Positions 351 through 57,740 of a stretch of DNA of 64,000 nt are shown here, one piece after another (the stretch's first letter is position 1; each line of letters begins with the position of its first letter). The translations under genes and the position numbers were made by a program. Origin of the DNA: Basidiobolus meristosporus CBS 931.73. Its lineage: Eukaryota > Fungi > Basidiobolomycota. The stretch lies in assembly GCA_002104905.1 (NCBI GenBank), contig MCFE01000018.1, forward strand, positions 182,066 to 246,065, in the 5' to 3' direction. The notes beneath the pieces were generated by a model that saw nothing but the letters and a program-made list of their open reading frames with translations, ran no database searches and was not told the DNA's origin.

Positions 351-3300
351 CTTGTGGTTCACTGCCTGTTAGTTTGTTTTTAATAACTGTAGTCCACCTT
401 TTTACTCCAAGCTTTCATATCCGCTCCCATATTCACATGGTTGACCCATAATACCATCTGTTTGCTTTGTAGAACCAAATGTGAACTGATACCAATTAGG
501 TGTACTGTCAATCTAGATCTACCGATTAGCTAGTTAAATGTGTCAGTCGATCCACCTAATTCCGGTATTGTTCATTGTCAATTTCTAACCAAATGCAGTT
601 TACACCAATAAAACCTCATTTATTAACACTCTCCACCCATGTGTGAGGAAAATACCATTAATCGGTAAGCGCTCTAAATAATGTGACTAATTGATTGTCA
701 AGATGAGGGTAAATTATTTTTGCATCGTGTTTCCTATGTGACCTATAAAACGATTCGTAGCCATATAGTAGCTGATTTGTTAATCGACAGGTTTCGACGC
801 TAGTATCTTAATAAAGTTACGCTTTATGATAATGACCACAAGTAAGGGTAGCATAATTGGGATAGTGTTAATGCTTCAACTATTAACAACTATGTAACAT
901 TGTCCGGTTCCTACTCAGCATGCGTGTAGACTCTCTTATCATCAATTGCTATTTGGGGATGAAGTATAAATTTAAATACATCTAACTCCGGTATTTCTCA
1001 GTCAAGAGCATCTACGAATTGTCAAGTAATCAAAAACCTGTGGATGGGGATGAAACCATTGCCATCTAATTTAATAACTACCCCTACTCAGGGTGGAGTT
1101 TTATCTCCTTTCGGCAAGTGGCGCACATATCATACCAATTTTGTCAGTAACATGAACTATATAATTCCGAGATCTTTTATATTATGCATTATTATTCTAA
1201 ACAGAAATGTGATCTGATAAAACTGCCTTTTTCAGTGAGCAGTACATTGATTGGCACTACCTTGCTATGGGTATGAAATATTAAACAAATAATATGGATT
1301 GAATCAACTAGCGGAATTAATATACCAATCCAAATATTCTACAATATTGACAAGGTACCGCTTACAATTCTTCATGCCATCATCTGTTGACATATGATCA
1401 TAGTATTAAGTTAGATACAAGGGTGCGTACTTGATCGCGTTTTAGCGGACTAGCCAGTTAATAGGCAAAGTCAAGACAGCCAGGACCCACTTATCGTGAT
1501 GCGATATGTAATATCATCAACAGTTATGCATTTTGCTTTCAAGTATAACGTAGTGCATAATTAATCGATTTTTTATTTTACATTTCTGTGGCCATTTGCG
1601 AAATGGCTTTCCATCTATGCTACTGACCGGAGCATCGGCACTTTCACAATCACACTACCACCGGCAGTGATCATGTGCATTGAAAGACATAAGCAACTCA
1701 AGATATTAGCGATGAGTTCTGCCAATCAACTAGTCAGACTGCTAGTATTGCATACCAAATTAAGGTGTTAGTATCTCAGATGGTTGGTGAGAGTTATTAA
1801 ACAGGCTCTACAAGGATCTATCGGTTGAATCAGTAATCAGATAGCAACTGACGATTTGTGGACATATGATCAGATATACTTGAATTGGGTGGATTCTCTC
1901 ATGTACATAACTGGCTTATTTCAGTGAAGTATCTACTCGGTGGCTCTAGACTGATGAAGCATTGGATTAGTGCTGTTCACATCGATATCTACGTAGGGAA
2001 CAAATGACATGTGAAGCCTAGCAATGTGAATATGGGAATTGGTAAAGAGGCCTGGAAGAAAGTGGCTGACTCTGTATTACTACCAATGACTTTCGATCAT
2101 GACCCTGTGAAAAAAATGCCATACAGAAGGAGTGGATAAATCATTACCAAAGATGCAGCATAAAAGGCTGACTAGGGCTTGACAAACATCAAGCCTAGTT
2201 TCACTCTACAAAAAGCCCGCTGTTAGACTGAATATTCCGTTTGCAGCGTCTCTGCTTGGCAGCCTTCCATCTGGAGGTCATTACGGTACCAGTACCGGAG
2301 AAGTTCGCATGAATTTTCAAGCGTGTCATGTTATATCCGAACCGCAGGTCGCACAAGACAAAGTTTATTTGTTGTCACGTCTAGAGTACTTGTAAAGAAT
2401 AAAACATCTATCGAGGGTAATTCTTAGTTGTATATATTGTATAGTTTAGGTTTGATATTTATGAATGGATACTATCTTCTATGGGGGAATAGGAAGTATT
2501 AGAGCTTGAAAGTTGGAGGTATAGTAGTTTTGCATGGATTTAACGTTGCGCTATATAATTCTGGATTCTAAAGATAAAAAATTAATTAAACCCTAACCCC
2601 GCTACCAAAGCTGGGCATGTTCGGTTCCGCACTTAATAGGTTTCTGAGAATATCGAAAAAATTATGGTATTTATTCGGCGTACAGGTGTCGTCAAATATC
2701 CCAGAGAGCCTTGCTTTTGACTAAATTCAACAATAATGTAGTGAAAGAGTCTACCGATGTCAGGAAACCTGTTGGGATCATATCTCCCAATGTTTCACCT
2801 ATCCAGTTTAAATGGTAGTGAAGAGCATTAGACTTTTGAACCTGTGCTTGGGCGTTCATGATTTGATCGGTCATGTATCGATGATCATCTTTTAAATGCA
2901 TAAATATGTTATTGTAAACCAATATACTGAAGAGCAATGCAATTATGAGTCGATTTAGAGAAGCTTACAGAAATTCGGCAGTTCAGAGGGCCTCCGAGTC
3001 GACGCGTTCAGAACTGAGTATTCATTGGCTTTGGCATAATTGAATACGTCTTCCGCCCATCCCAACGTCAGATACGGCAATCAGAACGCCCTTATGTCCA
3101 CCAAAGCAGCACTGAAATACACCGAGTATAATCAGTCCTATGGCTTTTATTAGAGATTCCTGCAGCGAATACCATAGCAATTTGACTGATCCCATTTGCA
3201 TTTAATTTACCACTGTACATGGTATTCATGATTCCCTTCACTACATTGTTGCTCAGGGTTTTACCTGCTCATTTACTGGAAAGACAGAGGTCAATACTTG

Positions 3301-4793
3301 TGGTACGATGGGTAACGCAGCAGGAATTACTTCAATGACTCATCCACTTGCATATAAAATCTACATATTTCACTAGCCTTAAATATATAACCCTTCTACG
3401 GTGGAGAATCATTCATGCTAGGCTTCTGCTGTTTGAAATACATAATTTCAGCGGAGGCAGAGCTTTTGGATACTAGTGAACATTATGTTTCAAGGTTGCT
3501 GGTTGAAATAACCCGCTGCGCATTGTTGATTGGCACTACGAAATATTATACAACCGTATGTGTATGTGGCTTGTATCAAATCACTGTAATGTGGATCTGT
3601 TTCCAAATTCGTAGTTCAGTGCTATGAAGAAATACATGAAATCTAGATCTTTTATTTTTTACACTATTGTTCCAAAATGCAATGTGATCTGAGACTCTTG
3701 CTGTTTTCAGTAAGCGGTACAATGATTAGCAGCACCATGCCGTAGATATGAGATATGTATCACATGTTGAATGGTTGGAATCAACTAATGGATTTGATAA
3801 ATCATTCCAAATATTCTACACTGTATTCATGGTGCCGCTCACGACTCTTCGTGCCGTCAGGTGTTGACACTTAGCCATACTACCAAGTAGATATTGTTGT
3901 TCAGACTTCACCACGTTTTAGCGGACTACCCAATTTGTAGATGTAACCATGAGGGCCAGGAATATACATGTCGAGATGCGCTATATAATGTTATCAACAT
4001 TAATGTAGTGGACATTCAGGTATGATGTAAAGCATTATTAATCTGCGATTTAGGAAACGTTTCTGTGGCTGGTTGGGATAATACTAGGTATAATACTATT
4101 CATCAGGTCCATTATTGCAATATTACATCAACGCTACCGCCGTGGAATCAGCATTATCCCAATCACGTTGCCATCAGCGATATGCATAAGCATATTGGCA
4201 CACATGTAAACCTATCACATTGTTAACTTTGCGACTTGCCAATCAGCCGGTCACATTGTTGGCATAGCGTGCCGATTCAAGGCATTACCTTTTCGAGATG
4301 TGTGGTGAAAGTTATTAAATGGATCTGTACGTTTCTATCGGCACAAACAGTATTCAGATAGAAATTGACGATACGAAATTGAATAAATGCTCAGATATAC
4401 CTGAATAAGGTGGATTTCCTCATGTTCATAGCTGGCTTATCTCAGTGAATCGGCCACTTGGTAGATCGAGATTGCTGAAGGTTCCGATTAGTGCTGATTC
4501 GCGTTGACCTCTACATTGGGAACGTATAACATGTGAAGCCCAGTGATGTGAATATGGAAATGGATGTTGAGGCCTGGAGCAAAGTGGCTGACTTTGCATT
4601 ATTACCAATAACTTTCGATCATGACCCCGGAAGAATGTACCATACGCAAGGAGTGGATAAATCATTACCAAAGATGCAGCATAAAAGGCAGGCTATGAGA
4701 AGTCAAACAGCAAGCCTAGTTTCACTCTACAAAAAGCCCTCCGTTTGACTGAATATTCCGTTTGCAGCATCTCTGCTTGGCACTCTTCCATTT

Positions 4794-5842
4794 GGAGGTC
4801 ATTACTGTACCAGTACCGGTGTTATTCACATGAACTTCCAAGCGTGTCATGTTGAATCCGAGCCGCAGGTTACCAGCGTGAAGTCAATGTATATTTGTTG
4901 TCACGTTTAGAGTACTTGTAAAGAATAAAACGTCTATCGAGGGTGAATCTTAGTTGCTTGTATGATATGGTTTAGGTTCAGTAGTTATGAATGGGCACTA
5001 TCTTTCCTGTAGGTGAGTAGGAAATGTTAGCGTTTGTATGTTGCAAGTTTAGTAGTTTAACATGGAATCAATGTTCCGCTATATATATAATGGGATTGGA
5101 GTGATTAAAAGCAAGCAAATATATGGAGGTGAAGAAGTGCTTTGAACAGGCAGCGCTTGCCGATTATAGAAGGTCGTTTGAAGATATGAAAGGGGAACAT
5201 AGATTTGGATTTAGTTCGGTGCATTTGCATCTTCAAATACCCCGGAGAATCTTGCTTCCGACTGAATCCAGCAGTAAATTGATTAATGAATCTATTGAGT
5301 TTAAGAAACAAGCTGTGACCATGATTGTTTACTACATTACAAGGAAGTTAGAGTCCCATACTTGGGGTATGGTGGGCTATGAAGCAAATATTACTAAAAT
5401 GACTTAACACTTGCGAATTAAATCGACACACGTAACTCGCCTTAAAGTTGAATCCGTCCAAGGTTTCATATTGTTTATGCCGGACCATTGCTGATTTAGA
5501 GTACGCATCCACCATATTTGCTTGCTTTTAATCACTCCAATCCCATTATATATATAGCGGAACATTGATTCCATGTTAAACTACTAAACTTGCAACATAC
5601 AAACGCTAACATTTCCTACTCACCTACAGGAAAGATAGTGCCCATTCATAACTACTGAACCTAAACCATATCATACAAGCAACTAAGATTCACCCTCGAT
5701 AGACGTTTTATTCTTTACAAGTACTCTAAACGTGACAACAAATATACATTGACTTCACGCTGGTAACCTGCGGCTCGGCTTCAACATGACACGCTTGGAA
5801 GTTCATGTGAATTACACCGGTACTGGTCCAGTATTGACCTCC
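4794..5842. repeat. Inverted repeat, arms ~4794-5123 and ~5513-5842, loop ~390 bp
   Basis: Arms are near-perfect reverse complements. Confidence 0.93.
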
Positions 5843-6779
5843 GGATAAATGGCTGCCAAGCAGAGATGCTGCAAACGGAATATTCAGTCAAACGGCGGGC
5901 TTTTTGTAGAGTGAAACTAGGCTTGCTGGTTGATACACCGTAGCCAGCTTTTTATGCAGCATCCTTGGTAATAATTTATCCCCTCATTTCGTATGAGATT
6001 ATTATTCCAGGGTCATGATCGCATGTTATTGGTAATAGAACAGAGTCAGTCACTTTGCTCCAGGCCTCTATTCCCATTTCCACATTTACACCGTTGGGCT
6101 GCACATGTCATTTGTTCCCAGTATAGATGCTGATACGAATCGTTACTAATCGGTTCCTTTAGGAATCTCGATCCTCCGAGTGTCCGATTCCCTGAGATAG
6201 GAAAGTGACGAGCATAAGTGAATCCACGCAATTTAGGTAAATCCAGTCATATATTACCTGCACCTCATCGATTTCTCCATGATTGCTGCTTTTATCAATC
6301 AAACCGTACTGTTTTCATTTAATAACTTGCACCATCTATTCGTAAGGATAAGACCTCATTTCGTTATGCAATGCAAACGAGCTATTGATTGATCGCCGAT
6401 TCGTTGAGCTAATACCTCGACAGTGATGCTACAAATTTAGTTAATAATCATTTTATTGAATTGGATCAAGGTCAAGCTATTTATAATAGGTATATAGCGT
6501 CAAATTTATAGAGTGCAATTCAAAATACTTCTGGGCTAGTGATTATATTCAATTAGCATGAATAAAGGATGCGCAATGAATTAATTCAACATATTTCGAT
6601 TTCATTTTAGCTGAGTCGACAGTATTCTGTGTGGATACCAGATTTCTGGTAACAGTATAAATCATTAGTTAAGTTTTGTTTGCGATATGCTAGTGCATGG
6701 TGTACTAATCAATCAACCACAATAACCTTATACTCAAATTTATCCCTTAATATTCTTTAGTGCGGCATGAAATGAGGCA

Positions 6780-7710
6780 ATTACTGAAAGAATGATTGGG
6801 ACCAGTAGTGTGTTACCTAAGCACCGAGGTGGAAATCGACTTGGATACCAAAATCCACCCATTACTTGATTATTTACCGGTGCCAATATCCATGGATTAC
6901 TGGGTTTAAAGCCTGGACCCTATGTGCCGACTAGATTAGGATACCCAGGGTGCTTTCTTCCAGCCACACTCAACGGGAAGCTAATGTACACCATGTGATT
7001 TTGGTTTTCAGCTGCAGCACCCTACAACGCTGCAGATCCCGCAGTTCAATAATGATGGCGAATAAACACTATCGCTGAGTAATGAAAACCCGCAATATAT
7101 TTGATACGTGCTAACCGTAAGTAGCCCTGGCAATCGTAGCGTCCCATTGTCAGAAGACCTATCACAAAAATGATCATCAACACCATAATAGTTGATAAAA
7201 GGAGTCATGAATTCTCTGAAAAGCCTTTATTCGTTAATTTACTCAGGTCAACATTAGAACACCGATGACTTTCTGGCAACTTTCATACCCAACTAACTGC
7301 AATGGTACTGGATTTGCGGACTTGCTTCATCCAACAGCTGGAAACGGAAAACGGTAGACAACGCGGAGGCCCAAGAGTAATCACCGAATCGGCTGAACAG
7401 AGATATTATAAAGAGTGGAGAAATACTTGATTATTGACCAAGCGGTAGCCTTGGATTTATAGTCTCTGCTGACCCCTGGTCTGTATCCACTATACCCCGG
7501 AGTATTTTGATGGATATTGTATACTCTTCATTGGCTTTCCTGGATTAAACAGAATATTCTCCAAAGCACTGAGGCATGAAGCTCGGGATCCAATGAACTC
7601 TCCTGCGAAGTCATCAAATGAGTATTTCCGATATATATGGTGACAGGATGATAATCATCCCACCAATGATGACTGGCAGAACAATACGCGTCTCAGGACT
7701 ATAATCAAGG
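6780..7710 (+). pseudogene. Degenerate C-terminal half of a more distant RdRP paralog (copies at ~31440-31950, 45600-46530; inverted arms 8316-8850 and 47134-47710)
   Basis: LCADQIRIPGVLSS..VAYVH resembles AWADQ...LS..C..LA.LH; TKR.PWIY..C.P...FIGFP resembles KASAWYYVTCHP...ISFPW. Confidence 0.55.
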
Positions 7711-8850
7711 GGTGATCAGCATTGCACTGACTTGAAACACTTTTGCACATCTACTTTGAGAAACGAGCAACTTAATATCTATGCGTGAGTCATTGTCACT
7801 GTATTGTGTATTTAGAATTGGTTGCCTGACAATCTGGACCCTGTGTCAACAAGCCGATTTGCTGAGCTATCTGGTGGCAAAATTTTCATATTGACCTGTA
7901 GGATTCGAAGGTAGTCGATTTATTCGTATGCACCTTCTTAACATAAGAATATCAATAAAATTGGCTAACAAAGGTCTGTACCGAGGAGCTATGCACAATA
8001 TGGTGCCAACAATTGGGTCTAGTTGCTATGAATATTTTATTGAGTGGTAGTGTTATTAGCACTGTGATTACACCTGAATATTCCATCAACTTGCTCACTA
8101 AAATCATATTGCATGCACTACCCTAACCCTGAGAAGTCTCAAAGATGTCCAAACAGCACCAAACTTTGCACACATGTTCTTGGGACCTCCCCAGCATATT
8201 TTATGTGTTTGTTTTGCCATGATGATGTAAAAGTATATATACTACCTTTACATTCAATTAATCATAAAGTAAAAAAAACATAATAGTCATTTTCTACTAA
8301 TCACTCCTTCATTTTAGTCCTGAAACACGTATTGTTCTGCCAGTCATCATTGGTGGGATGATTATCATCCTGTCACCATATATATCGGAAATACTCATTT
8401 GATGACTTCTCAGGAGAGTTCATTGGATCCCGAGCTTCATGCCTCAGTGCTTTGGAGAATATTCTGTTTAATCCAGGAAAGCCAATGAAGAGTATACAAT
8501 ATCCATCAAAATACTCCGGGGTATAGTGGATACAGACCAGGGGTCAGCAGAGACTATAAATCCAAGGCTACCGCTTGGTCAATAATCAAGTATTTCTCCA
8601 CTCTTTATAATATCTCTGTTCAGCCGATTCGGTGATTACTCTTGGGCCTCCGCGTTGTCTACCGTTTTCCGTTTCCAGCTGTTGGATGAAGCAAGTCCGC
8701 AAATCCAGTACCATTGCAGTTAGTTGGGTATGAAAGTTGCCAGAAAGTCATCGGTGTTCTAATGTTGACCTGAGTAAATTAACGAATAAAGGCTTTTCAG
8801 AGAATTCATGACTCCTTTTATCAACTATTATGGTGTTGATGATCATTTTT
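7166..8850. repeat. Inverted repeat, arms 7166-7700 and 8316-8850
   Basis: ~535-bp arms nearly identical in reverse complement. Confidence 0.95.
8040..8310 (+). mobile_element. PPT plus LTR remnant with an internal telomere motif (inverted copy at ~46530-46800)
   Basis: gagtggtagtgtt start, caaactttgcacacatgttcttgggacc LTR core, CCCTAACCCT at ~8121. Confidence 0.7.
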
Positions 8851-11800
8851 ATGATATTGACTACTGACAAATATAAGCAGAGAGTGATTAATGGGGTCTG
8901 TACGGTTTAATGCACAAACGCAGTCTCGTTACAGATCTGGATATCATGCCGGTGGATATAGGACCAGATCCGGTTCAATTGGGTGGATTTTCCTTTTCCT
9001 TTCTTTTTGCTTATCTCAGTAAATTGGCTTTTCGGTGGATCGAGATTGATTAAGGATCCGATTAGTAAAGATTTGTATTGGATCTACGCTGGGAACCAAT
9101 GACATATGAACCCCAGCAATGTGAATATGGGAATGGGAATAGTGGCTTGGAGCACAGTGGCTGACTTTGCATTATTACCAATAACTTTCAATCATGACCC
9201 CGGAAGAATGTACCATACGCAAGGAGTGGATAAATCCTTACCAAAGATGCAGCATAAAAGGCAGGCTATGGTACGACAAACATCAAGCCTAGTTTCACTC
9301 TACAAAAAAGCCCGCAGTTAGACCAAATATTCCGTTTGCAGCGTCTCCGCTTGGCAGCCTTCCATCCGGAGGTCACTAATGTACTAGTGCCATTGTAGTT
9401 CACATGCACTTCCAAGCGTCTCTTGTTGAATTCGAACCTCAGGTCAAAAGTGTCAAGTTGCAGTTTGTTTGTTGTAACGAATAGAGTGCTTGTAAAGAAT
9501 AAAACGTCTTTCGAGGGTGAAATTTAGTTGCATGTATAGTATGGTTTAGGTTTAATATATATGAATGGGCCCTATTTCTCCTGTAAGGGAGTAGACAATA
9601 TTCTCATATGAATGATGCGAGTTTGGTAGCTTATCCGGAATCAATGTTGCGCCATGTTTGTATAATCGAATTGCAACGATAAAAATGAAGTAGATTTTGG
9701 GTCTTCAAACGTATTTCAACTACTAAACCAGGCATGCTTGATTTCGAACCGTCGAAGGTTTCTGAGCATATGTGTTTATCACAATGATCTGGTTTTCATT
9801 CAGCGCATTGGTGTCGTGAAATATCCTGGGAGCCTTACTTTCGTCTGAACCTAACAGTAAACCAGTAAAGTATACAGCAGTACGTTATTAGTAGATTCAG
9901 AAGAGCTAATGGAAATTCGGCAGTTCGGACGATCCTCGAGTTTGACACGTTCTGAGCTGAGACTTCTTTGGCTTTAGTGTGAAATAAGCCAGACTTCCAC
10001 CAATCCTAATGTTAGATACGACCACAAGAATGCTCTTGTGTCCACCAAATCTTTGGATTGAATGAATAAGTCTTCTACCCATTCGAACGTCAGATACGAC
10101 CACCAGAACGCTGTTGTGTCCACCAAAGCAGAACTGGACTGTACCGGGTATTACCAATCCTATGGCATTTACTAGGGACCTCTGCCTGGATTGCCACAGT
10201 AATGTGACCAACACCTTTTTCATAAAAATTGCCAGTGTATATGCTATCCATGATTTCTTTCACTACATCGTTGCCCAGGGTTTTACCTGCTCGTATCCTG
10301 GAAAGACGGGCCAATACTTATGATATGATGGGTAACGTAGCAGAACGTAGCAGAAATTACTTAAATGACTCGTCCACTTGCATATAAAATCTACATATTT
10401 CACTAGCCTTAAAATATAACCCTTCTACGGTGGAGAATCATTCATGCTAGGCTTTTGCTGTTTGAAATACATAATTTGAGCGGAGGTAGAACTTGTGGAT
10501 ACTAGTGAACATTATGTTTCAAGGTTGCTGGTTGAAATAACCCGCTGTGCATTGTTGATTGGCACTACGAAATATTATACAACCGTATGTGTATGTGGCT
10601 TGTATCAAATCACTGTAATGTGGATCTGTATCCAAATTCGTAGTTCAGTGCTATGAAGAAATACATGAAATCTAGATCTTTTATTTTTTGCACTATTGTT
10701 CCAAAATGCAATGTGATCTGAGACTCTTGCTGTTTTCAGTAAGCGGTACAATGATTAGCAGCACCATGCCGTAGATATGAGATATGTATCACATGTTGAA
10801 TGGTTGGAATCAACTAATGGATTTGATAAATCATTCCAAATATTCTACACTGTATTCATGGTGCCGCTCACGACTCTTCGTGCCGTCAGGTGTTGACACT
10901 TAGCCATACTACCAAGTAGATATTGTTGTTCAAACTTCACCACGTTTTATCGGACTACCCAATTTGTAAATATAACCAAGAGGGCCAAGAATATACATGT
11001 CGAGATGCGCTATGTAATGTCATCAACAGTAATGTACTGGGCATTCAGATATGGTGTAAAGAACAATTAGTCAGCGATTTAGGATCCGTTTCTGTGGCTA
11101 GTTAAAAATACACTTCATCAGGTTCATTTTTGCAATATTACATCTATGCTACTGCCGTGGAATTAGCACTATCCTAATCACGTTGCCATCAGCGATATGC
11201 ATAAGCATATTGGCAATATGTCAAGTTTGCACCCTTACAACCATTCCTTCGCATTGTTAGGATTGCATGCCGATTCAAGTCATTACCTTTCTCAGATGTG
11301 TGATGAGAGTTATCAAAGAATCTGTACGGTTCTATCGGTACAAATAGTATTCAGATAGAAATTAACGATACGAAAGTGCATAAATACTCAGATACACCTG
11401 AATTGGGTGGATTCTCTCATGTTCATAACTGGCTTATCTCAGTGAATTGGCCACTCGGTGGATCGATATTGCAGCAGATTCCGATTAGTGATGATTCGCG
11501 TTGACCTCTACATTGGGAACAAATGTCGTGTAAGGCCCAGTGATTCCAATGTGGGAATGGATATAGAGGCTTGCAGCAAAGTGGCTGACTCTGCATTATT
11601 ACCAATAGCTGTCGACCATGACCCCGGAACAATAATGCCATACGCAAGGAGGGGATAAATCATTACCGAAGATGCAGCATAAAAGGCTGACTAGGGTTTG
11701 ACAAACAGCAAGCCTAGTTTCACTCTACAAAAAGCCCGCCGTTCGACTGAATGTTCCGTTTGCAGCGTCTCTGCTTGGCAGCCTTCCATCCGCAGGTCGC

Positions 11801-14800: not shown

Positions 14801-15439
14801 CTGAGTTGTATGGTCATATATCAACAGAAGCTGACGTAGAGAGTTCTGAACGGCACGATGACAACAGTGTAGGATATTTGGAATGATTTTTCAGTTCCAT
14901 CAGTTGATTGAAACCATCCCACAAGTGATGCGCATCCCATATCTACGGCACGGTGCTGCTAATCATTGTACCGCTTTCTTTAAACAGCAGGAATCAGATC
15001 ACAATTCTCTTTGGAACAACAACGCAAAAATAGCTCGTTGTGCTGACTTGCCAATTGGGAATTAGATCTATATCTTAGTAATAAGTTACAAGGCACATAC
15101 AGCTGAAAAATATCTTGTGTCAATCAGCAACCTTGAAATCACAATATTCACTCAACTAATATCATAAGTTCTATCACCACAGAAATTTTGAAATTTGTTG
15201 GAAAACATCCCATATAAATGTTAAGCAAATGTCACAATTGACCGACACCAAACATAACTCAAATCTACAAATGCAAGACCATAATCAATAAACAGTTTGT
15301 TCAGTACATATTTTCTAATCTGTGCAATAAATGAACATGACTGACACTTGTGACCTTTGGTAGGATTTACTACGACATGTTTGGAAAATTAGGGTGAAAA
15401 TCGCGGTCAATTGTAGAGTGGTAATTTCCGGGTGGAAGA

Positions 15440-15602: not shown

Positions 15603-15619
15603 AACTAAATGCTCATACT

Positions 15620-26905: not shown

Positions 26906-26914
26906 TAAGCAACT

Positions 26915-37005: not shown

Positions 37006-37018
37006 GTATATTAACAGA

Positions 37019-37497
37019 ACTGAAGTCTTTGGCTTGGGCGTAGGTGAACAAGGCTTCCGCCCATCCTATCATCAGGTACGACCGCAAGAACGCCCTTGTA
37101 TCCGCCAAAGCGAATCTGAAATGCACCAGGTGTCAGCTTCTGGTTGGAGATTTCCGCAGCTAATGACAATGCGATTTGCCCGACTCCATTAGAATATGAA
37201 TGGCCGTTGCGCATGATATGGCAAAGAACCAACAGCTATGCTCCCGAAGCTGGGTGGATGAAAAAGCCAGGAAGCGATAATGTCGCTTGCCAATATGAAA
37301 TCCTTCAGTCAATGTTTCCTCAAAACTGTCGAAAACGGCTTGATTCAGCTGGCTGTTCGGGCCTATCTTCTCAAATCGCTCTTCTGAGAAGGTGACCTGG
37401 ATGAAGTACTCTCGGTATTGATGAAAGTGCCTCAACACTCGGTTTGAGGGCTCCAAAGATGGTGGTAAGAGGTGGATCTTGCTGGGAGTAACGAATG
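37019..37497 (-). pseudogene. Recent near-identical fragment of the intact RdRP with an internal ~160-bp deletion
   Basis: 37221-37497 is the reverse complement of 55534-55810 and 37019-37219 of ~55972-56175; only a few substitutions seen. Confidence 0.97.
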
Positions 37498-45944: not shown

Positions 45945-47710
45945 TAATCACTCTCTACTTTCATTTGTAGGTACTCAATACCATAAAAATCATCAGTGAC
46001 ACTATAATAGTTGATAAAAGGAGTCATGAATTCTCTACAAAGCTTTTATTCCTTGATTTACTCAGGTCAACATAAGAACACCGATGACTTTCTGGCAACT
46101 TTCATACCCGACTATCTCCAATGGTAATGGATTTGCGGACTTGCTTCATCCAACAGCTGGAAACGGAAAACGGTAGACAACACGGAGACCAAAGGCTAAT
46201 CACCGAATCGGCTGAGCAGAGACATTATAAAGAGTGGAGAAATACTTGATTAATAACCAAGCGGTAGCCATGGATTTATAGTCTCTGCTGACCCCTGGTC
46301 TGCATCCACTATACCCCGGAGTATTCTGATGGATATGATATACTCTTCATTGGTTTTCCTGGATTAAACAGAATATTCTCCAAAGCACTGAGGCATGAAG
46401 CTCGGGATCCAATGAACTCTCCTGAGAAGTCATCAAATGAGTATTTCCGATATATATGGTGACAGGATGATAATCATCCTACCAATGATGACTGGCGGAT
46501 CAATACGCGTTTCAGGACTAAAATGAAGGAGTGATTAGTAGAAAATGACTATTATGTTTTTTTTACTTTATGATTAATTGAATGTAAAGGTAGTATATAT
46601 ACTTTTACATAATCATGGCAAAACAAACACATAAAATATGCTGGGGAGGTCCCAAGAACATGTGTGCAAAGTTTGGTGCTGTTTGGACGACTCTGAGACT
46701 TCTTAGGGTTAGGGTAGTGCATGCAATATGATTTTAGTGAGCAAGTTGATGGAATATTTAGGTGTAATCACAGTGCTAATAACACTCCCACTCAATTAAA
46801 TATTCATAGTAACTAGACCCAATTGTTGGCACCATATTGTGCATAGCTCCTCGGTACAGACTTTTGTTAGCCAATTTTATTGATATTCTTATGTTAAGAA
46901 GGTGCATACGAATATACCGACTACCTTCGAACCCTACAGTTCAATATGAAATTTTGCCACCAGATAGCTCAACAAATCGGCTTGTTGACACAGGGTCCAG
47001 ATTGTCAGGCAACCAATTCTAAATACACAATACAGTGACAATGACTCACGCATAGATAATAAGTTGCTCGTTTCTAAAAGTAGATGTGCAAAAGTGTTTC
47101 AAGTCAGTGCTATGCTGATCACCCCTTGATTATAGTCCTGAAACGCGTATTGATCCGCCAGTCATCATTGGTAGGATGATTATCATCCTGTCACCATATA
47201 TATCGGAAATACTCATTTGATGACTTCTCAGGAGAGTTCATTGGATCCCGAGCTTCATGCCTCAGTGCTTTGGAGAATATTCTGTTTAATCCAGGAAAAC
47301 CAATGAAGAGTATATCATATCCATCAGAATACTCCGGGGTATAGTGGATGCAGACCAGGGGTCAGCAGAGACTATAAATCCATGGCTACCGCTTGGTTAT
47401 TAATCAAGTATTTCTCCACTCTTTATAATGTCTCTGCTCAGCCGATTCGGTGATTAGCCTTTGGTCTCCGTGTTGTCTACCGTTTTCCGTTTCCAGCTGT
47501 TGGATGAAGCAAGTCCGCAAATCCATTACCATTGGAGATAGTCGGGTATGAAAGTTGCCAGAAAGTCATCGGTGTTCTTATGTTGACCTGAGTAAATCAA
47601 GGAATAAAAGCTTTGCAGAGAATTCATGACTCCTTTTATCAACTATTATAGTGTCACTGATGATTTTTATGATATTGAATACCTACAAATGGAAGTAGAG
47701 AGTGATTAAT
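45945..47710. repeat. Inverted repeat, arms ~45945-46519 and ~47134-47710
   Basis: Arms nearly identical to each other; paralogous to 7166-8850. Confidence 0.95.
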
Positions 47711-50700
47711 GGGTCTGTACGGTTTAATGCACAAAAGCAGTCACATCATAGATCTGGATGTGATGCCAGTAGATATAGGACCATATCCGGTTCAATTGGG
47801 TGGATTTTCCTTTGCCTTTCTTTTTGCTTATCTCAGTAAATTGGCTTTTCAGTGGATCGAGATTGATTAGGTATTCGATTAGTAAAGATTTGTATTGGAA
47901 TCTACATTGGGAACCAATGACATGTGAAGCCCAACAATGTCAATATGGGAATGCGAATAGTGGCTTGGAGCACAGTGACTGTCGTTGCATTACTTACAAT
48001 CACCTTCGATCTTGACTCCGGACCAATGTACCATACGCAAGGAGTGGATAAATCCTTAGTACTTCCAAGCGTGTTTTGTTGAATTCGAACCTCAGGTCAA
48101 AAGCGTCAAGTTGCAGTTTGTTTGTTGTAACGACTAGAGTGCTTGTAAAGAATAAAACGTCTATCGAGGGTGAATCTTAGTTTCATGTATAATATGGTTT
48201 AGGTTTAATATATATGAATGGGCCCTATTTCTCCTGTAAGGGAGTAGACAATGTTCTCATATGAATGATGCAAGTTTGGTAGCTTAGCCGGATTCAATGT
48301 TGCGCCATGTTTATATAATCGGATTGCAACCATAAAAACGAAGTAGATGTTGGATCTTCAAACGTATTTCAAACTAGTTAACCGGGCATACTTGATTTCG
48401 AACTGTCGAAGGTTTCTGAGCATATGTGTTTATCACAATGATCTGGTTTTCATTCAGCGCATTGGTGTCATGAAATATCCCTGGGAGCCTTACTTTCGAC
48501 TGAACCCAACAGTAAACCAGTATAGTAAACAGCAGTACGTTATTAATAGATTCAGAAGAGATAATGGAAATTCAGCAGTTCGGACGATCCTCGAGTTTGA
48601 TACGTTCTGAGCTGAGACTTCTTTGGCTTTAGTGTGAAATAAACCAGACTTCCGCCAATCCTAAGGTTAGATACGACCACAAGACCGCTCTAGTGTCCAC
48701 CAAATCTTTGGATTGAATGAATAAGTCTTCTGCCCATTCGAACGGCAGATACGACCATCAGAACGCTTTTGTCTTCACCAAAGCAGAACTGGACTGCACC
48801 GGGTATTACCAATCCTATAGCATTTACTAGGGACCTCCGCCTGGATTGCCACAGTAATGTGACCAACACCTTTTTCATAAAAATTGCCAGTGTATATGCT
48901 ATCCATGATTTCTTTCACTATATCGTTGCTCAGGGTTTTACCTGCTCGTATCCTGGAAAGACAAGCCAATACTTATGATATGATGGGTAACGTAGCAGAA
49001 ATTACTTGAATGGCTCATCCACTTGCAAATGAAATCTACATATTTCACTAGCCTTAAAATATAACCTTTTTACGGTTAAGAATCATGCATGCTAGGCTTT
49101 TGCTGTTTGAAATACATAATTTCAGCGGAGGTAGAACTTGTGGATACTAGTGAACATTATGTTTCAAGGTTGCTGATTGAAATAACCCGCTGCGCATTGT
49201 TGATTGGCACTACAAAATATTATACAACCGTATGTGGCTTGTATCTAATCACTGTAATGTGGATCTGTTTCCAAATTCGTAGTTCAGTGCTATGAAGAAC
49301 TACATGATATCTAGATCTTTTATTTTTTTCGCTATTGTTCCAAAATGCAATGTGATCTGAGACTCCTGCTGTTTTCAGTAAGCGGTACAATGATTAGCAG
49401 CACCATGCCGTAGATATGAGATATGTATCACATGTTGTATGGTTGGAATCAACCGATGGATTTGATAAATCATTCCAAATATTCTACACTGTGGTCATGG
49501 TGCCGCTCACGACTCTTCATGCCGTCATCTGTTGACACATAGCCATACTACCAAATAGATATTATAGCTCAGACTTCACTAAGTTTTAGTGGACTACCCA
49601 ATTTGTAGATGTAACCAAGAGGGCCAGGAATATACATGTCGAGATGTGTTATATAATGTCATCAACAGTAATGTAATTGGCATTCAGATATGGTGTAAAG
49701 CATAATCAATCAGCGATTTAGGGTACGTTTCTCTGGCTGGTTGGGATAATACTCTTCATCAGGTCCATTATTGCAATGTTACATCTATGTTACTGCCGTG
49801 GAATTAGCACTATTCTAATCACGTTGCCATCGGCGATATATATAAGCATATTGCCAATATGTCAAGTTTACACCCTTGCAACCATTCATTGTTAGGATTG
49901 CATGCCGATTCAAGGCATTACCTTTCTTCGATGTGTGATGAGAGTTATTAAAGGGATCTGTACGGTTCTATCGGTACAAATAGTATTCAGATAGAAATTA
50001 ACGATACGAAAGTGTATAAATACTCAGATATACCTGAATAGGGTGGATTTCCTCATGTTCATAACTGCCTTATCTCAGGGAATCGGCCACTCGGTGGATC
50101 GATATTGCTGCAGGTTCCGATAAGTGATGATTCGCGTTGACCTCTACATTGGGAACAAATGTCATGTAAGGCCCAGTGATTCCAATGTGGGAATGAACAT
50201 TGAGGCTTGGAGCAAAGTGGCTGACTCTGCATTATTACCAATAACTGTCGATCATGACCCCGGAACAATAATGCCATACGCAAGGAGGGGATAAATCATT
50301 ACCGAAGATGCAGCATAAAAGGCAGGCTATGGTACGACAAGCATCAAGCCTAGTTTCACTCTACAAAAAGCCCGCCGTTAGACTGAATATTCCGTTTGCA
50401 GCGTCTCCGCTTGGCTGCCTTCCATTCGGAGGTAACTCCTGTACCAGTGCCGGTGTAGTTGACATGAACTTCCAAGCGTGTCATGTTTAATCCGAATCTC
50501 AGGTCACCAGCGTCAAGTCAAAGAATGTTTGGTGTAATGACTAGAGTACTTGTAAGGAATAAAACGTCTATCGAGGGTTAATCTTAGTTGAATGTATGAT
50601 ATTGGTTGTGTTGAATAGTAATGAATTGACACTTACTCAGAGAGTCGGAAACGTTTTTATCGGATAAGTCAAGTTTGGTGTCTTGGCATGAGTTTGACCT

Positions 50701-53700
50701 TGTGCTATATATATAATTATATCTCATTGGTAGAAACGAAGTAAATGCAATATCACCTCCACACTTCTGACAGAGCAATCGTTTCAAAGTGTTAACTCTG
50801 TGACCTGCCAATCACTAAGTCGTATTGTTGGCATTGCATGAAGATTTAAGGCATTACATTTCGCAGATGTGTGGTTAAGAGTTATTCAAGGGATCTGTAC
50901 GTTTCTATCGGTACAAGCAGTATTCATGTAGAAATTGACGATATGCGGATGGAATAAATGCTCAGATATACCTAAATTGGGTGGATACTATCATGTTCAT
51001 AATTTGCTTACCCCAATGTATCGGCCACTCGGTGGATCGAGATTGCTGAAGGAACCGATTAGTTCTGATTCCCGTTGGACTCTACATTAGGAACATAGGG
51101 CATGTGAAGCTCAGCGATGTAAATGTGGAAATGGGAATAGAGGCCTGGTGCAAAGTGGCTGACTGCATTAGTACCAATAGCTGTCGATCATAACCCCGGA
51201 ACAATAATGTCAGACGCAAGGAGTGGACAAATCATTCCTAAAGATGTAGCATAAAATGCAGACTAGGTACGGCAAACAGCAAGCCTAGTTTCACTCTACA
51301 GAAAGCCTGCCGTTCGACTGCACATTTCATTTGCAGCGTCTCTGCTTGGCTGCCTTCCATCCGAGGGTTACTACTGTACAAGTACCGGTGTAGTTCGCAT
51401 GATTTTCCAAGCATATCGTGCTATATCAGGAACGCAGGTCAAAAGCGTCAATTCGAAATTTATTTGTTGTTCCGATTAGAGTGCTTGTAAGGAATAAAAC
51501 GACTATTATGGGTGAATGTATGATATGGTGTAGGTTTCGTAGTTACGAATGAAAATTATTTCTCCTGTCAGGGAGTATGAAATATTCTGCTCGTATAATG
51601 CAAGTTTATTAGTTTAAATTTGATTCAACGTGGTGCAGTATATATAATTTCATTGTAATCATAGGAATCGAGTCAATTTCTGGCCTTGAATACGAATCTC
51701 GAACGGGCAGAACGCGGTCCACATAATTCTGAACTATGAAAGGGTAGTGTTTTTAGGCCAGTGGCATGGGTGGATTTCATTTCCACATTGATGAGTTATT
51801 TTAGCAAAATGACAACGTCGCCCATCATACCAGCAGTATTGGTCTCTGGATATCCAATCAACGAATAGCTAAAATTACCATGGCTTTAGCTACAGAAATC
51901 ACTAGTAAACGCCATAGAAATGTCATATGCGGTACGTTTCAGTTCAGCTTTGTTGCGCACAAGAGTATTCATGAGGTCGTACCTGACGGTTGGGTCGCCG
52001 GAAGACTTGTTCATTTACGCCCAAGCCAGAGAAGTTCAGTTCAGAAAGTTCCGACTTGTAGATCGTGCGAACCGCCGTATTATTGCAAACCAATCTGAAT
52101 TGAAAAATCATCTTAAGCTGTCTGAAATGTAGGTTACCGATAATGCTTGATTCATTTGCGAGATGATCACCTATACATAACGGATTAAATCTTGAACGAC
52201 CAATCACTGGCTTGAAAGTCACTGGCCCTTTACTACCACTGAGGCTGGGTAGGCGACACATTGGCAAATATGGTAAGAGTATATTCCCAAATGTCCGCAG
52301 ATTATTTCAACAAATTACCGCTGGATTGAGTCGGAAGCCATGCTATCTAAGATATTTGACGATACAAGTACGCTGAACGAAAACCATATAAACATTTAAC
52401 TAAGATTCACCCTCAATAGACGTTTTATTCCTTACAACTACTCTGGTCATCATAACAAATAATTTTGATTTGACGTTTGACCGGCGTTTCTGATATAACA
52501 TGACCTGCTTAGAATTTCATGTGAACTACACCGGTACTTGTACAGTAGTAACCTCCGGATGGAAGGCAGCCAAGCAGAGACGCTGCAAACGGAATATTCA
52601 GTCAAACGGCGGGCTTTTTGTAGAGTGGAACTAGGCTTGATGTTTGTCTTCTCATAGCCCGCCTTTTATGCTGCATCTTTGGTAATGATTTATCCACTCC
52701 TTGCGTATGGTACATTCTTCCGGGGTCATGATCGAAAGTTATTGGTAATAATGCAAAGTCAGCCACTTTGCTCACCAGTTCATTGGCTACTCTTAATGCT
52801 GATGTTTTGATAGGGTTGCATATTCCACTTTATGCAAATGACCATTGCTGATGATAGCGTAATCGAGATGGTGATAATGCCTCAGTCAGAAATATAGATG
52901 CAATATTGCCATCATGGCCTTGATGGAAAGCCATTCCTAAACCGACCACAAACACGTATTGTTGATTGTCCATTTATTATGCATTGGCCTTATCTGAATG
53001 CAAAATACATCAATGTAGATGACATTACATAGTGCATCACGATAAGTATATTCCCGGTAGCGTTAGGTATACATATGAAATGGAGAGTTCACTATACCGC
53101 GGTGAAGTAGGATCCTAAGTATCACATTTATATCTATGATCAATGTCAACAGATAATGAAGATTTGAGAGTGGCACCTTGACCAGTGTAAAATATTCATC
53201 ATAATTTTTCATTTCTAATGCAGGAATATAAAATCTCATCTCACTTCAATTCCGAATTTCTGTTCAGAACTCCTTGTCATGACCCCAGAATCTAGATATA
53301 CGTGCACATGATGCAATTTACGACAAATGGATAAATCGTTACCGAAGTTGCCAGCCCCTGCATGATGTTTTTTGTCGGTCTTGTTGAAACATATTACGTA
53401 AACACATCCAGTACAAATTCCATAGGCAGTGCAATTAATGAATATGAATAGTCACTTGCGACCTGTGGTTCGGATATACCACGATATGCTTGGAAATTCA
53501 AGTGATCATCAAATGAACTGGTACAGAAGTGATCGCTAGATACAAGGCTGACAAGCAAAGAATGCTGAATACGGAATATTCGGTCTAACGGCGGTCTTCT
53601 GTAGAGTAAAACTAGGCTTGCTGTTTGTTATGCCATACACTGCCTTTTATGCTAAGCCTCTATATCCATTCCCGGTGGTTAATGCCTATCTGTACCAATC

Positions 53701-54267
53701 TACTACTTCAGCAATCTCGATACACCGAGTGGGCGAATTAATTGAGATAAGCCTGTTACGAACTTGGGAGGATCGAAGGTCACGCGATTGAGATAGTGCC
53801 AGGTCAATAGCAAGGATGGAACAATGCAATCATGGTGTTGATGGTTGTGTCAAGTAATACTGGTAACGGTGAATAATTCCAATTCAAAATCATGTTCACT
53901 AGCTATTGTATAGACTTACAATGCATTGAGATTTATAATAATTCACAAAGTAAAAGTCAATTGTGAAAATGCTTGCAGTCTGATGCTTTTTGGATTCTAG
54001 ACACATGCTCTTCTAGAATATGGGTTGTTAAATTGAGCGAAGGATGCCAATTTGGCCCTTTCGCCTTCTGTCGGTTGTATATGTACCCGTTATGTTCTGT
54101 ATGATTCCCCATTATATACAATGGGCTTCGATTACAGGTCAGAAATGTGTTACTGAATCTGCATTCCAAATTTGATTCCTTCACTAAGGTGTATAAATTG
54201 TGGCGAATATGAAACCATAATCAGTTATAAATATCAACCGCTTCGCCAACGCCTTATTTATCGCATA

Positions 54268-57200
54268 ATGTACAGAGCAAGTGATAAGGTAAGAGCTATT
54301 AATCATTTGTCATGTATTACGTAGCTCTAAAACTTCTAAAATAATAGTCGAGGTTAGGAGAAAAGCAGAATCAAGAATTGAGGAGTACTGGCATTGGCCC
54401 TCACTTACTCAATACACACGGTCTCCACGAGTTGGGTATCTATGTCAAAGGTCTGCCAATTAGTATGAAAGCCGATGAAATCCGAAAGTATTTTTCTACA
54501 TGGGGACATGTTAGCAGATGTAACGTGATAAACGTTAGGACACAGAGCAGAAACAAAGCCGCTGTAGTTGTATTTAGCCCACCGCCACCTTCTCTAGACT
54601 TTATGAATGAGGGTCTCCAGCCTGCCAACATGGGCAAAGAAAATAGATTTCTCGACATAGATTTTACTACCAAAACTTCAACGCGCATTCAAAGTCAAGA
54701 AAGAGGAGAATACGCGAAAGAATTTTTTCAGTCTGAAGTAACTTGCATCGACATGGGAATATTGATAAACAGCAACAAATTTCTGAGTGTTTGGAGGCCA
54801 TCTGGCAGTTGTACTCTTGAGGTGAATGTGGAGAGACAGCTTATATTTTTCAAATTTAACCACACGAGCGACTATTACAGAATTGGAGTAAGATTCGAAG
54901 ACGTCCGTAACGGTATAATACTGAACCGAGGTGATGAAGATGCGTATTTACTGCACTTCAAAATCGCCCATTGCCCTTACTTGTGGCGGAAACAGGAAAT
55001 GGTTTCTCCATCTTCGGATAGTTGGAGTGAGGAGGATTCGTGGATGCGTGTCCCTTATATTATCGATCAACGGGTCGAAGATAATAACAGAGTTCACTTT
55101 GGTAACTTTTCCGTCTATCGAGTCAATGTTCCAAGCCATAACCAATCGGGTGAATCTTTCCAAGAGGCTCTTGACAATATGACGTGTTGCGGGCTTATAT
55201 TTACCGCTTCCAACTCCACTAGCCCCATCGAAATGAATCAATCGAAACACTCGGTAATTGATATTCACGCATCACTTCCGTTTGAGTTGGCTTACCTGAT
55301 CGAATGCTTAGTCAGTGCGCAGAAACTAACCATGTACAGTTTAACGCAAGAATGGATCACATTTTTGAGTGATCTTGATGTACGGATTGGTAGGAATGTA
55401 CTGATGAGCATGATGATGGCCAAATGCTTTATTGAAGACCCCTTGGCCTACACTCAATCAATTCTACCAGTGCTCGGAATTGATCTCATCGATCTCGCGG
55501 AAACCCCCATGCAAAAATTGTGGATCAACCGGGCATTCGTTACTCCCAGCAAGATCCACCTCTTACCACCATCTTTGGAGCCCTCAAACCGAGTGTTGAG
55601 GCACTTTCATCAATACCGAGAGTACTTCATCCAGGTCACCTTCTCAGAAGAGCGATTTGAGAAGATAGGCCCGAACAGCCAGCTGAATCAAGCCGTTTTC
55701 GACAGTTTTGAGGAAACATTGACTGAAGGATTTCATATTGGCAAGCGACATTATCGCTTCCTAGCTTTTTCATCCACCCAGCTTCGGGAGCATAGCTGTT
55801 GGTTCTTTGCTGATACATCTGAGGGTGTAGATGTAGATTTCATTCGCAAGTGGATGGGCGATTTCAGTGATATTGGTAATATTGCCAAGCGCGCAACAAC
55901 CATGGGCCTGTGCCTTTCCAGCACACGAGCAGTAAAAAGCCTGAGCAAGCAGCAAGTGAAAGAAATTCCGGATATCATGCGCAACGGCCATTCATATTCT
56001 AATGGAGTCGGGCAAATCGCATTGTCATTAGCTGCGGAAATCTCCAACCAGAAGCTGACACCTGGTGCATTTCAGATTCGCTTTGGTGGATACAAGGGCG
56101 TTCTTACGGTCGTACCTGATGATAGGATGGGCGGAAGCCTTGTTCACCTACGCCCAAGCCAAAGATGTTTCAGTTCAGAACATTCCGACTTGGAGATCGT
56201 CCGAACCGCCGAATTTCTTCCAGCTTATCTGAATCGACAAATCATCGCACTGCTGTCTACCATGTGGGTTTCAGATGATGTATTTTTGCAATTGCAAGAT
56301 GATCACTTACGCATAACAGATCAAATCATGAACGACCAAGCACTGGCTTTGAAGTTTTTGGCCCTTCACTACCGTTCGAGCTGGATAGGTGACACATTAG
56401 GAGATATGATCGCTGCAGGTTTCCTAGAGTCTGGTGACACTTTTACCAAATTGCTTCTGGGCTCAATTAGAAGTCAGGCTCTTCGGGATATCAAAGAGCG
56501 CGCCAGAGTTCCTGTCGAACAGGGTGCCAACTTGATTGGTGTCATTGACGACACGAATACTCTGAAGGAAAACCAGATCTTTGTTCGATACACAGATCCC
56601 CAAAACCCTTCTACGGTTCGGAGTTATATAGGCCCGGCGTTGGTTGCTAGAAATCCATATTTGCATCCAGGGGATATGCATATGGTTGAAGCTGTTGATT
56701 GTCCGAAGCTTCATGGACTTGTGAATTGTGTTGCATTCTCTACACGCGGTGCCTATAGCTTACCAAGTCAATGTAATGGTGGCGACCTGGATGGCGACAC
56801 ATATGTGGTTATCTGGGATAAGCGACTATTTCCATACCACAAGGAGTCCCCATTGAGCTACTGCAAACAGGAGGGTGAAACTGTCAAGCCTATCACTACT
56901 AAGGATACCGTGGACTTTTTCCTCAACTTTGTAAAATCCAATAATTTGCCCCAGATTGCCAACGCTCATTTGGCCTGGGCTGACCAGTCTGAAGATATCA
57001 CATTGTCCCCCAGGTGTGTCACCCTGGCTAAACTCCATGCCAAAGCAGTGGATTTCATGAAAACAGGGATTCCGGTTAAGCTGCAGCCAAGCGTGATTCC
57101 GAAGCACTGGCCTGACTATATGAACAAATTACCAAGAAAATCGTACCCTTCCTCGAATGTTCTGGGCCAGATGTTCCGGAGTGATGCCTTAAAACATCAA

Positions 57201-57740
57201 ATATCCGAGTACTCCCTGTCCAATTGCACAGGGGAGATTCACTTTGATGAGAGAATGATGGTGTCGGGATACGAAGAATACTTGGCAGAAGCCAGAAAAC
57301 TGAAGCAGGAATATGACATGACGATCGCCAATATCATGAGTCAGCATGAAATCCAAACAGAAGCTGAATTAATCTCAGGGTGTATTCAATGTATTCCTTC
57401 CTTAGCTAGCCGCAGAAAGGAGAGGTATTTGCTTAAAGAAACTCTCAGTAGTGTCATTGGTGCAGTTTGGAGAGTCTTTCGTGAACGGTTTAATAATGAC
57501 TCTCCAGCAGCACCAGCTGAAGATTATGAGATTAAGGCCACCTTGAATCGAAAAAGAAAGGCCAGCGCTTGGTACTATGTGACGTGTCATCCAACTGAAA
57601 TATTACTACAAAGGAACCAAGAACTTTGCAGTGCTCTGATATGCAATGGTCTCAATGAAGTGACAAGACCAGTTTACATATCTTTCCCTTGGATAGTTCA
57701 CGATATCCTGACGTTGATCTTACAAGAGTCAGTGTTGTGA
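54268..57740 (+). CDS. Eukaryotic RNAi-type RNA-dependent RNA polymerase (alpha-type, N-terminal RRM-like domain; SAD-1/RDR-like), about 1137 aa, probably 2 exons (54268-54288, 54348-57740)
   Basis: 1120-codon ORF with RdRP motifs FLAFSSTQLR, FQIRFGGYKG, RNPYLHPGD, catalytic GGDLDGD, AVDFMKTG, ASAWY, SFPW. The tracked ORF starts at TTG; an upstream ATG micro-exon splices in frame. Confidence 0.96.
54289..54347 (+). other. Predicted 59-bp spliceosomal intron of the RdRP gene
   Basis: GTAAGA donor after ATGTACAGAGCAAGTGATAAG, CTAA branch-like sites, TAATAG acceptor; removal joins the ATG in frame with the long ORF. Confidence 0.75.

Follow-up and report, generated by a model that had tools for sequence, protein, structure and literature searches.

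Segmental-duplication blocks that carry gene fragments are known from subtelomeres, e.g. the Y'/X elements of yeast and the telomere-linked RecQ helicase gene families of fungi. Large palindromes are kept alike by arm-to-arm gene conversion, or are made by fold-back repair or breakage-fusion-bridge cycles. Pseudogenes can also be loci of endogenous siRNAs, as in mouse oocytes and trypanosomes, where antisense or inverted copies pair with the mRNA of the parent gene.

How does a chromosome end of Basidiobolus meristosporus CBS 931.73 compare with these systems? The window analysed here (the whole stretch of 64,000 nucleotides, from contig MCFE01000018.1) resembles the yeast and RecQ subtelomeres in that a multi-copy gene family adjoins the telomere, in its mosaic of duplicated blocks in both orientations with decayed partial copies, and in its apparent sequence exchange between copies and its retroelement insertions. 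The gene, however, is an RNAi-type RdRP and not a helicase, a single internal 0.8-kb piece tied to a non-coding repeat was amplified, and most of the RdRP pieces sit in palindrome spacers. The palindromes are like the large ones described elsewhere in that the two arms agree at 94-98.5% but duplicated palindromes differ by 6-10%, and in their short spacers, a perfect 87-nt stretch beside one spacer and a position near the chromosome end, but they are small (arms of 0.4-0.9 kb), numerous and non-coding, with pseudogene scrap in the spacer. As at the pseudogene siRNA loci, an active gene has nearby an antisense fragment almost identical to it (the fragment termed R5), and inverted duplicates could give hairpin RNA; in contrast to those loci, all copies but R5 are too diverged, and the parent gene belongs to the silencing machinery itself. 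A literature search found nothing on RdRP fragments or subtelomeres in Basidiobolus.

The intact RdRP gene

The gene and the telomere lie as follows, in coordinates of the window.

54268..57740, plus strand: intact RRM+RdRP gene (evidence: reading frame and translation, Pfam, paralog-conserved start, dN/dS, unitigs)
63806..64000, plus strand: terminal TTAGGG telomere repeat

A preliminary description of this DNA had proposed one intact RdRP copy about 6 kb from the telomere, and both points hold. A single uninterrupted RdRP reading frame occupies 54378-57740 (+), and the TTAGGG run starts, at 63806, 6.1 kb past the stop codon. The proposed gene structure consists of a 7-codon exon 1 (54268-54288), a short intron and a long exon ending at 57740; the ATG and the GTAAG donor of exon 1 are also conserved at the paralogous loci L001 and L003. 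The Pfam RdRP match (PF05183; 1.6e-171, 572 bits against a cutoff of 23.8) covers profile positions 1-580 of 582, i.e. a full-length domain, and the translation carries the catalytic DxDGD loop as DLDGD. An RRM_1 match (4.7e-06) lies in the N-terminal part, as in relatives from Entomophthora, Rhizophagus and rotifers. Set against the cellular RdRP family (QDE-1/RDR type), with which it shares the full-length domain and the DLDGD loop, the protein itself is ordinary. The public gene model, of 743 aa, omits the predicted RRM part, which is supported by the reading frame and the paralogs.

The closest RdRPs belong to B. meristosporus (77%) and B. ranarum (69%). With dN/dS values of 0.19-0.21 against L001 and L003, the gene is, judged by this ratio of about 0.2 to two paralogs, under purifying selection. 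The subfamily is multi-copy, and at least one other paralog (L001) is also near telomere-type repeats. The element adjacent to the telomere matches a contig of B. meristosporus CBS 931.73 at 96% identity.

RdRP fragments

Outside the intact gene, RdRP-derived DNA is present at 11 loci totalling 6.2 kb, plus one 49-bp scrap. Their share is about 10% for the window and 17% for the repeat blocks (37 kb). The same 11 loci were recovered by tblastn with six Basidiobolus RdRPs, by a 43-sequence protein HMM run against the six-frame translation, by nhmmer with the gene and by a profile of the fragments (R), with E-values of 1e-12 to 1e-244 for nhmmer and down to 1e-48 for tblastn. Ten are listed here and the eleventh, R5, is described below; P1 to P7 denote palindromes.

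2600..3368, minus strand: R1, corresponding to gene nucleotides 55828-56649, with stops and frameshifts
5167..5428, minus strand: R1b, short RdRP scraps in the spacer of P1
9718..10398, minus strand: R2, internally rearranged RdRP fragment
13201..13820, plus strand: R3, in the spacer of P3; sequence of this copy is present in sequencing run X3
29312..29702, minus strand: R4, in the spacer of P4
39882..40645, minus strand: R6, duplicate of R1, 95.5% identical
42337..42728, minus strand: R7, in the spacer of P5, 90% identical to R4
43959..44341, plus strand: R8, a lineage of its own
48373..49043, minus strand: R9, duplicate of R2, 93.9% identical
51770..52389, plus strand: R10, duplicate of R3, 96.1% identical, in the spacer of P7

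Both strands carry such fragments, from 2.6 kb to 52.4 kb. Thus, what had been described as an RdRP graveyard does contain an intact subtelomeric gene and degenerate pieces in both orientations; the estimate of about 20 copies making up some 30 kb was too high, as the abundant repeat, termed X, is not RdRP.

Ten of the 11 pieces are old. All of these lie within gene nucleotides 55828-56665 (aa ~484-760, ~0.84 kb), and seven of the ten start at the same nucleotide, 55828/9. In a maximum likelihood tree of nine of the ten old fragments, the local gene and the paralogs L001 and L003, the nine fragments form one clade (100% support) that is sister to the local gene, with both paralogs outside the group of fragments and window gene (100% support). 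The single clade, the shared breakpoint and the common region of ~0.84 kb point to the copying of one fragment, not to the dying of many genes. Apart from a 141-bp piece in R5, neither HMM nor nhmmer found remnants of the N-terminal or catalytic region anywhere in the window.

Every copy has stops or frameshifts (indels of 1-2 nt). The dN/dS values between fragments are 0.3-1.4, vs 0.18-0.19 for the same gene segment compared with the paralogs; the pieces evolve nearly neutrally and have lost coding constraint. The longest exact match of the ten old pieces to the gene is 9-17 nt, in agreement with the earlier judgement that most old copies look too diverged to silence it directly.

Repeats, blocks and palindromes

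Besides the fragments there are two further repeats, X and Y, arranged with them in blocks. Blocks and palindromes carry no strand.

3450..5122, plus strand: reference copy of repeat X, non-coding
389..15200: block A, consisting of X, R and Y units, duplicate of block B
26900..32350: block C, the same units as A and B in an older and shorter version
37617..53775: block B, aligning with block A in four segments (~11.3 kb in total) at 91-95% identity
4303-6334: palindrome P1, R1b in spacer
7147-8870: palindrome P2, Y-type, without R
12214-14555: palindrome P3, R3 in spacer
28801-30273: palindrome P4, R4 in spacer
41402..43802: palindrome P5, X arms of 887 bp at 97.3% identity, R7 in a 627-bp spacer
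45939-47714: palindrome P6, Y-type, without R
51145-52778: palindrome P7, R10 in spacer

Repeat X gives 25 nhmmer matches in the window (21.7 kb; a family of 22-25 copies). The junction with R is fixed, the right end of X invariably meeting the gene-3' side of R, and the ends of the X copies are variable. The repeated unit had been expected to align to RdRP: the 11 R loci do so, whereas X and Y (21.7 and 6.2 kb) give no RdRP signal by protein HMM, tblastn or nhmmer. That X is a diverged RdRP was rejected, as a 43-homolog HMM (six-frame pieces of at least 50 aa), tblastn with ten RdRPs and nhmmer with the gene and its flanks were empty outside the 11 loci. X is likewise not a coding remnant (a conserved-looking 71-aa frame is broken by stops or frameshifts in most copies and has no Pfam hit) nor an LTR with sharp ends, the apparent sharp left end being an artefact of the query start. 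Rfam and tRNA scans of X and R were empty, and known RNAs were thus rejected as well.

Two partial X copies (52359-53775) lie 0.5-1.9 kb upstream of the start codon of the intact gene. The nhmmer match at 53411-53775 belongs to an X copy and lies outside the gene, as this stretch is not conserved upstream of the paralogs. X-like cores of 0.2 kb also flank paralogous RdRP genes in CBS 931.73; with other RdRP loci found in inverted repeats, this recurrence could be more than chance.

Blocks A and B are 5-9% diverged and represent a block duplication of ~15 kb, with the partners of the pairs R1/R6, R2/R9 and R3/R10 (94-96% identical) distributed between them. The transition/transversion ratio over the 11.3-kb alignment of A and B is 1.18-1.55, which argues against RIP-like hypermutation; RIP-type mutation was rejected, there being no strong C-to-T/G-to-A excess between duplicates.

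The seven palindromes have arms of 370-890 bp at 77-98.5% identity, and the spacer carries R in five of them. Among them are arms of 380-890 bp that are 94-98.5% identical, separated by spacers of 0.6-0.7 kb. The two arms of a palindrome agree at 94-98%, against 90-94% for the matching segments of A and B, i.e. the arms are homogenised. A palindrome of 85% identity has an 87-nt perfect inverted repeat at its inner ends. All seven are inverted repeats able to form long dsRNA.

The mosaic fragment R5

37014..37626, minus strand: R5, mosaic fragment

R5 is collinear with the gene but of uneven similarity, matching 54680-54820 at 71%, 55534-55810 at 99.6% and 55972-56176 at 97.6%. Long exact matches to the gene (199 nt) are confined to it. 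The junction 55810/55972 was seen in independent short-read unitigs at ~85x, which is single-copy depth. R5 is best explained as an older fragment that was partly overwritten by recent gene conversion from the intact gene, and its old 141-bp remnant from 54680-54820 implies that at least one longer RdRP copy once existed. In run X3 a unitig spans 55330-56257 without a break, a hint that the sample behind that run lacks R5. Could the array also serve as a donor archive for the active gene? The part of the gene homologous to R shows no extra divergence or mosaic, and this idea was rejected.

Perfect complementarity to the gene of at least 21 nt is found in R5 alone, the ten older pieces not exceeding 17 nt, and siRNAs matching the gene could come from R5 only. 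R5 adjoins a decayed Copia LTR with an RT scrap (36503-37005). The age of this LTR, which shares 68-71% identity with the intact element, and the RT scrap behind it make promoter activity doubtful.

Origin of the array

Homology to the gene, the shared breakpoint, monophyly, decay and the block duplication are directly observed. The zone is probably the product of ordinary duplication at a chromosome end, in which one gene fragment was amplified with X, blocks were duplicated and R5 was gene-converted. A copy of the local RdRP gene would have been cut down to one rearranged 0.8-kb piece (gene nucleotides 55828-56650), without the catalytic loop and with 64 bp of 56602-56665 attached in opposite orientation. 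This founder would then have joined the non-coding repeat X, and the resulting X+R unit (~2.5 kb) may have given rise to five sublineages through tandem and fold-back (inverted) duplication. Copia elements would have inserted before the duplication of the ~15-kb block, and the conversion that overwrote part of R5 would be the latest event. We infer this order, as well as fold-back or unequal recombination as the mechanism; the fragments are presumed to be by-products without function of their own.

Assembly errors are common where repeats and palindromes of high similarity lie at a contig end, and the read check, made with short-read unitigs of the probable source sample, covered 51800-57790 (6 kb) and the R5 junction. 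That the repeat structure is an assembly artefact is nevertheless scarcely credible: the unitigs of two runs reproduce 52738-57790, gene included, with 0 differences, as well as the R5 junction, and letters diagnostic of copy A were recovered in a third run. In addition, the divergence among copies (5-35%) follows a consistent phylogeny, which neither collapses nor misjoins would yield. Almost as improbable, and largely refuted, is one of the two readings offered in the preliminary description, an arms-race turnover in which whole-gene duplication gave rise to many RdRP paralogs, each decaying on its own. The multi-copy subfamily, with L001 near telomere-type repeats, and the 141-bp remnant of R5, from a different part of the gene, would fit such a history, but the old fragments share a breakpoint and a single clade (100%), the N-terminal and catalytic regions left no other remnants detectable by HMM or nhmmer, and RdRP-derived DNA amounts to just 6.2 kb. 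The many copies of a single gene piece, always joined in the same way to a non-coding repeat, also recall transposition of a non-autonomous mobile element (Helitron-like or Pack-type) after capture of an RdRP fragment. DNA transposons are reported to be abundant in Basidiobolus genomes (PMC5751038). Read depth over part of X is 12-17x single-copy, compared with seven window copies at least 90% alike, and suggests copies outside the window, but these may simply belong to the part of the array to the left of it. Transposition is improbable, as X has variable ends, a search of its copies for terminal inverted repeats, LTR-type ends and target duplications found none, no transposase or Rep/helicase remnants were found, and the copies abut in tandem or palindromic order within one locus and not in unrelated flanks.

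Does the array instead work as a source of dsRNA and small RNAs? Transcripts of the X palindromes would fold back and be diced, antisense R5 would pair with the RdRP mRNA, and the gene would be held under RNAi or heterochromatin feedback through R5 and the upstream X copies. Consistent with this are the long, highly similar palindrome arms with their short spacers, the antisense orientation of R5 to the gene on the chromosome with its 199-nt exact matches, and the X copies at 52359-53775 that adjoin the gene. Elsewhere, 0.57 kb downstream of a B. ranarum RdRP gene (L005) lies a pseudo-fragment of that gene, inverted tail to tail (88% identical, 38-nt exact match), and a B. meristosporus paralog is bracketed by inverted repeats of 0.72 kb and 2.1 kb. 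Run X3 covers only the gene body, within the gene region, and R3-type sequence; this transcriptome-like pattern looks like transcription of one fragment, but the library type is not on record and is a guess. Such a role is unlikely, since the old R pieces, with exact matches of at most 17 nt, are unable to direct cleavage of the gene, R is mainly found in the loops of palindromes and not in stems, R evolves nearly neutrally, and the LTR beside R5 is a doubtful promoter. Moreover, among five other Basidiobolus RdRP genes examined for a self-fragment within 10 kb, one was found only at B. ranarum L005, and three of the five loci had none. A wider version, in which Basidiobolus RdRP genes are wired into self-targeting feedback, is somewhat less likely still: antisense or inverted self-fragments (R5, the B. 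ranarum tail-to-tail copy) and flanking palindromes would give dsRNA, the siRNAs would tune expression of the very polymerase by which they are amplified, and gene conversion from the active gene would from time to time refresh the match of a fragment.

Significance

With chromosome-end duplication as the probable origin, an attractive over-reading is corrected: the locus is no archive of RNAi genes arising and dying time after time. It is a clean, datable example of a chromosome end multiplying one gene scrap by tandem, fold-back and block duplication, and it suggests that an active gene still passes sequence to a dead copy. In this fungus RdRP genes recur at chromosome ends or within inverted repeats, a pattern to which the locus adds a further case. 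The long, near-perfect palindromes would form dsRNA if transcribed, and should small RNAs arise from R5 or the palindromes, the debris of a silencing gene would be regulating that very gene, a rare situation.

The RdRP gene and the chromosome end

The sole long reading frame in the window (54378-57740, +) encodes a full-length Pfam RdRP domain (1.6e-171) preceded by an RRM at the N terminus, and includes a DLDGD loop; the RdRPs closest to it come from Basidiobolus meristosporus (77%) and B. ranarum (69%). Each of three RdRP paralogs retains a frame of about 1130 codons, with dN/dS of 0.19-0.21 among them; by these measures the window gene is intact and constrained, and it has no sign of sequence transfer from the array. 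The public model (743 aa) begins at an internal Met, without the RRM part. A 7-codon exon 1 (54268-54288, with ATG and a GTAAG donor), kept in two paralog loci, together with a short intron (54268-54432 for both) would extend the protein to about 1110-1137 aa.

Across 52738-57790, two runs from the probable source sample agree with the window at every position. Among runs recorded as RNA, none contains the gene. A third sequencing run, X3, of unrecorded type, covers only 54393-57665 and R3-type fragment sequence, with zero on 52800-54392, and its variant letters match copy A at 20 of 20 sites; the pattern would fit a transcriptome. At 51800-52160, the sole unitig in runs X1 and X2 agrees with copy A at four sites and with copy B beyond them; this points either to a difference between assembly and reads or to a third, recombinant copy. 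Unitig depth at 54400-54599 is about 2.7 times single-copy though the window has one copy, and one contig links 54454 to 54547, omitting 92 nt; related RRM-region sequence must be present elsewhere in the genome.

A TTAGGG run closes the window from 63806. Between gene and telomere (58020-63800) lie stacked modules that resemble one another, interrupted by internal TTAGGG runs (62636-62647, 63259-63282). The telomere-adjacent element is 96% identical to a contig of B. meristosporus CBS 931.73, which, with the RdRP matches, assigns the genome to B. meristosporus or a near neighbour of it. Parts of the 58020-63800 stretch also occur, at 96% identity, close to another RdRP paralog of CBS 931.73, L001, itself about 8.6 kb from telomere-type repeats.

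Composition of the array

Features of the window
389-15200, repeat block A
26900-32350, repeat block C
37014-53775, repeat block B
37014-37626 (-), R5, RdRP fragment collinear with the gene
15600-19400 (+), Copia-type LTR retrotransposon 1
21625-25530 (-), Copia-type LTR retrotransposon 2
3-337, 21171-21505, 26559-26893, 36503-36803, 58508-58825, solo/partial LTRs of about 335 bp
32449-33474 (-), DnaJ-domain ORF, 341 aa (Pfam 1.8e-15)
34117-35220 (-), ORF of 367 aa, no family match
61609-62409 (-), coiled-coil ORF, 266 aa

How much of the array is RdRP? Four independent searches agree on 11 loci and one 49-bp scrap outside the gene, 6.2 kb in total: tblastn using ten queries (the local protein plus nine relatives), an HMM of 43 sequences against the six-frame translation, nhmmer with the gene plus flanks, and a DNA profile built from the fragments. 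The RdRP array of the preliminary description is real, but its count of about 20 copies and its amount of about 30 kb were overstated. Blocks A, B and C make up 37 kb, of which X, a non-coding repeat, accounts for 21.7 kb, the second non-coding unit, Y, for 6.2 kb, the RdRP fragments (R) for 6.2 kb and an unassigned remainder for 3 kb. X is present as 22-25 partial copies with variable ends, and these are probably what was counted as "about 20". A conserved reading frame was looked for among the X copies and none was found; Pfam, Rfam and tRNA scans gave no match.

The two Copia-type elements face each other head-to-head and share 94-95% identity; their gag, integrase and RT frames are broken. 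Between the array blocks, unique sequence is confined to one stretch, which houses the two ORFs at 32449-33474 and 34117-35220.

Origin of the fragments

Did the fragments originate by many gene deaths, or from one scrap? All old fragments lie within gene nt 55828-56665, seven of them starting at 55828/9, and the catalytic loop is absent in every copy. Directly after R is a reversed 64-bp copy of gene 56602-56665 (profile E 3.6e-7), which supports an earlier suggestion of an inverted piece. The ML tree groups R1-R4 with R6-R10 in a single clade (100% support) whose sister is the window gene, and the L001 and L003 paralogs (80% nt identity) fall outside it, also at 100%. Judged from sequence, the R copies are one founder fragment, not many gene deaths.

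All copies have stops or small frameshifting indels, and R-to-R dN/dS is 0.3-1.4. There are five sublineages, 23-41% apart; the pairs R1/R6, R2/R9 and R3/R10 (94-96% identical) come from the duplication that gave blocks A and B, which differ by 5-9%. RIP-like mutation of the duplicated blocks is excluded, because ts/tv in the A/B duplicates is only 1.2-1.5. The locus is a subtelomeric amplification in which a single gene scrap and a non-coding repeat multiplied jointly.

Palindromes and other RdRP loci

In every case the right end of X joins the gene-3' side of R. There are seven short-spacer palindromes, five with X arms and an R piece in the spacer. Arm identity is 94-98.5% in four, against 90-94% for corresponding A and B segments, and a perfect 87-nt stretch adjoins the spacer of an 85% palindrome. 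On this evidence the arms are homogenised arm-to-arm, in agreement with what had been proposed at the first stage.

Inverted structures accompany other Basidiobolus RdRPs. One B. meristosporus paralog (L004, MCFE01000363.1, 2101-16111) sits inside nested inverted repeats of 0.72 kb (7384-8106 with 13165-13856, 93%) and 2.1 kb (2101-4173 with 14029-16111, 91%), unrelated in sequence to X. In B. ranarum (JASJQH010008822.1, 3232-3831), a stop-containing, inverted pseudo-fragment of the adjacent RdRP gene (aa ~280-474) lies 0.57 kb beyond that gene's stop codon; its identity to the gene is 88%, and the two share an exact match of 38 nt. X-like cores of 0.2 kb flank L001 and L003.

The mosaic fragment R5

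R5 is 71% identical to gene 54680-54820, 99.6% to 55534-55810 and 97.6% to 55972-56176, and its old part is nearer to the local gene than to any paralog. The 55810/55972 junction is present in short-read unitigs, with the shared parts at twofold depth. R5 can be read as an old copy with an internal deletion, part of which was later converted by the active gene; a decayed Copia LTR and RT scrap adjoin it. Long exact matches to the gene are found in R5 only (199 nt; 9-17 nt in other copies). If the array does have a part in small-RNA production, R5 and the palindromes would be its most plausible basis, rather than the old fragments.
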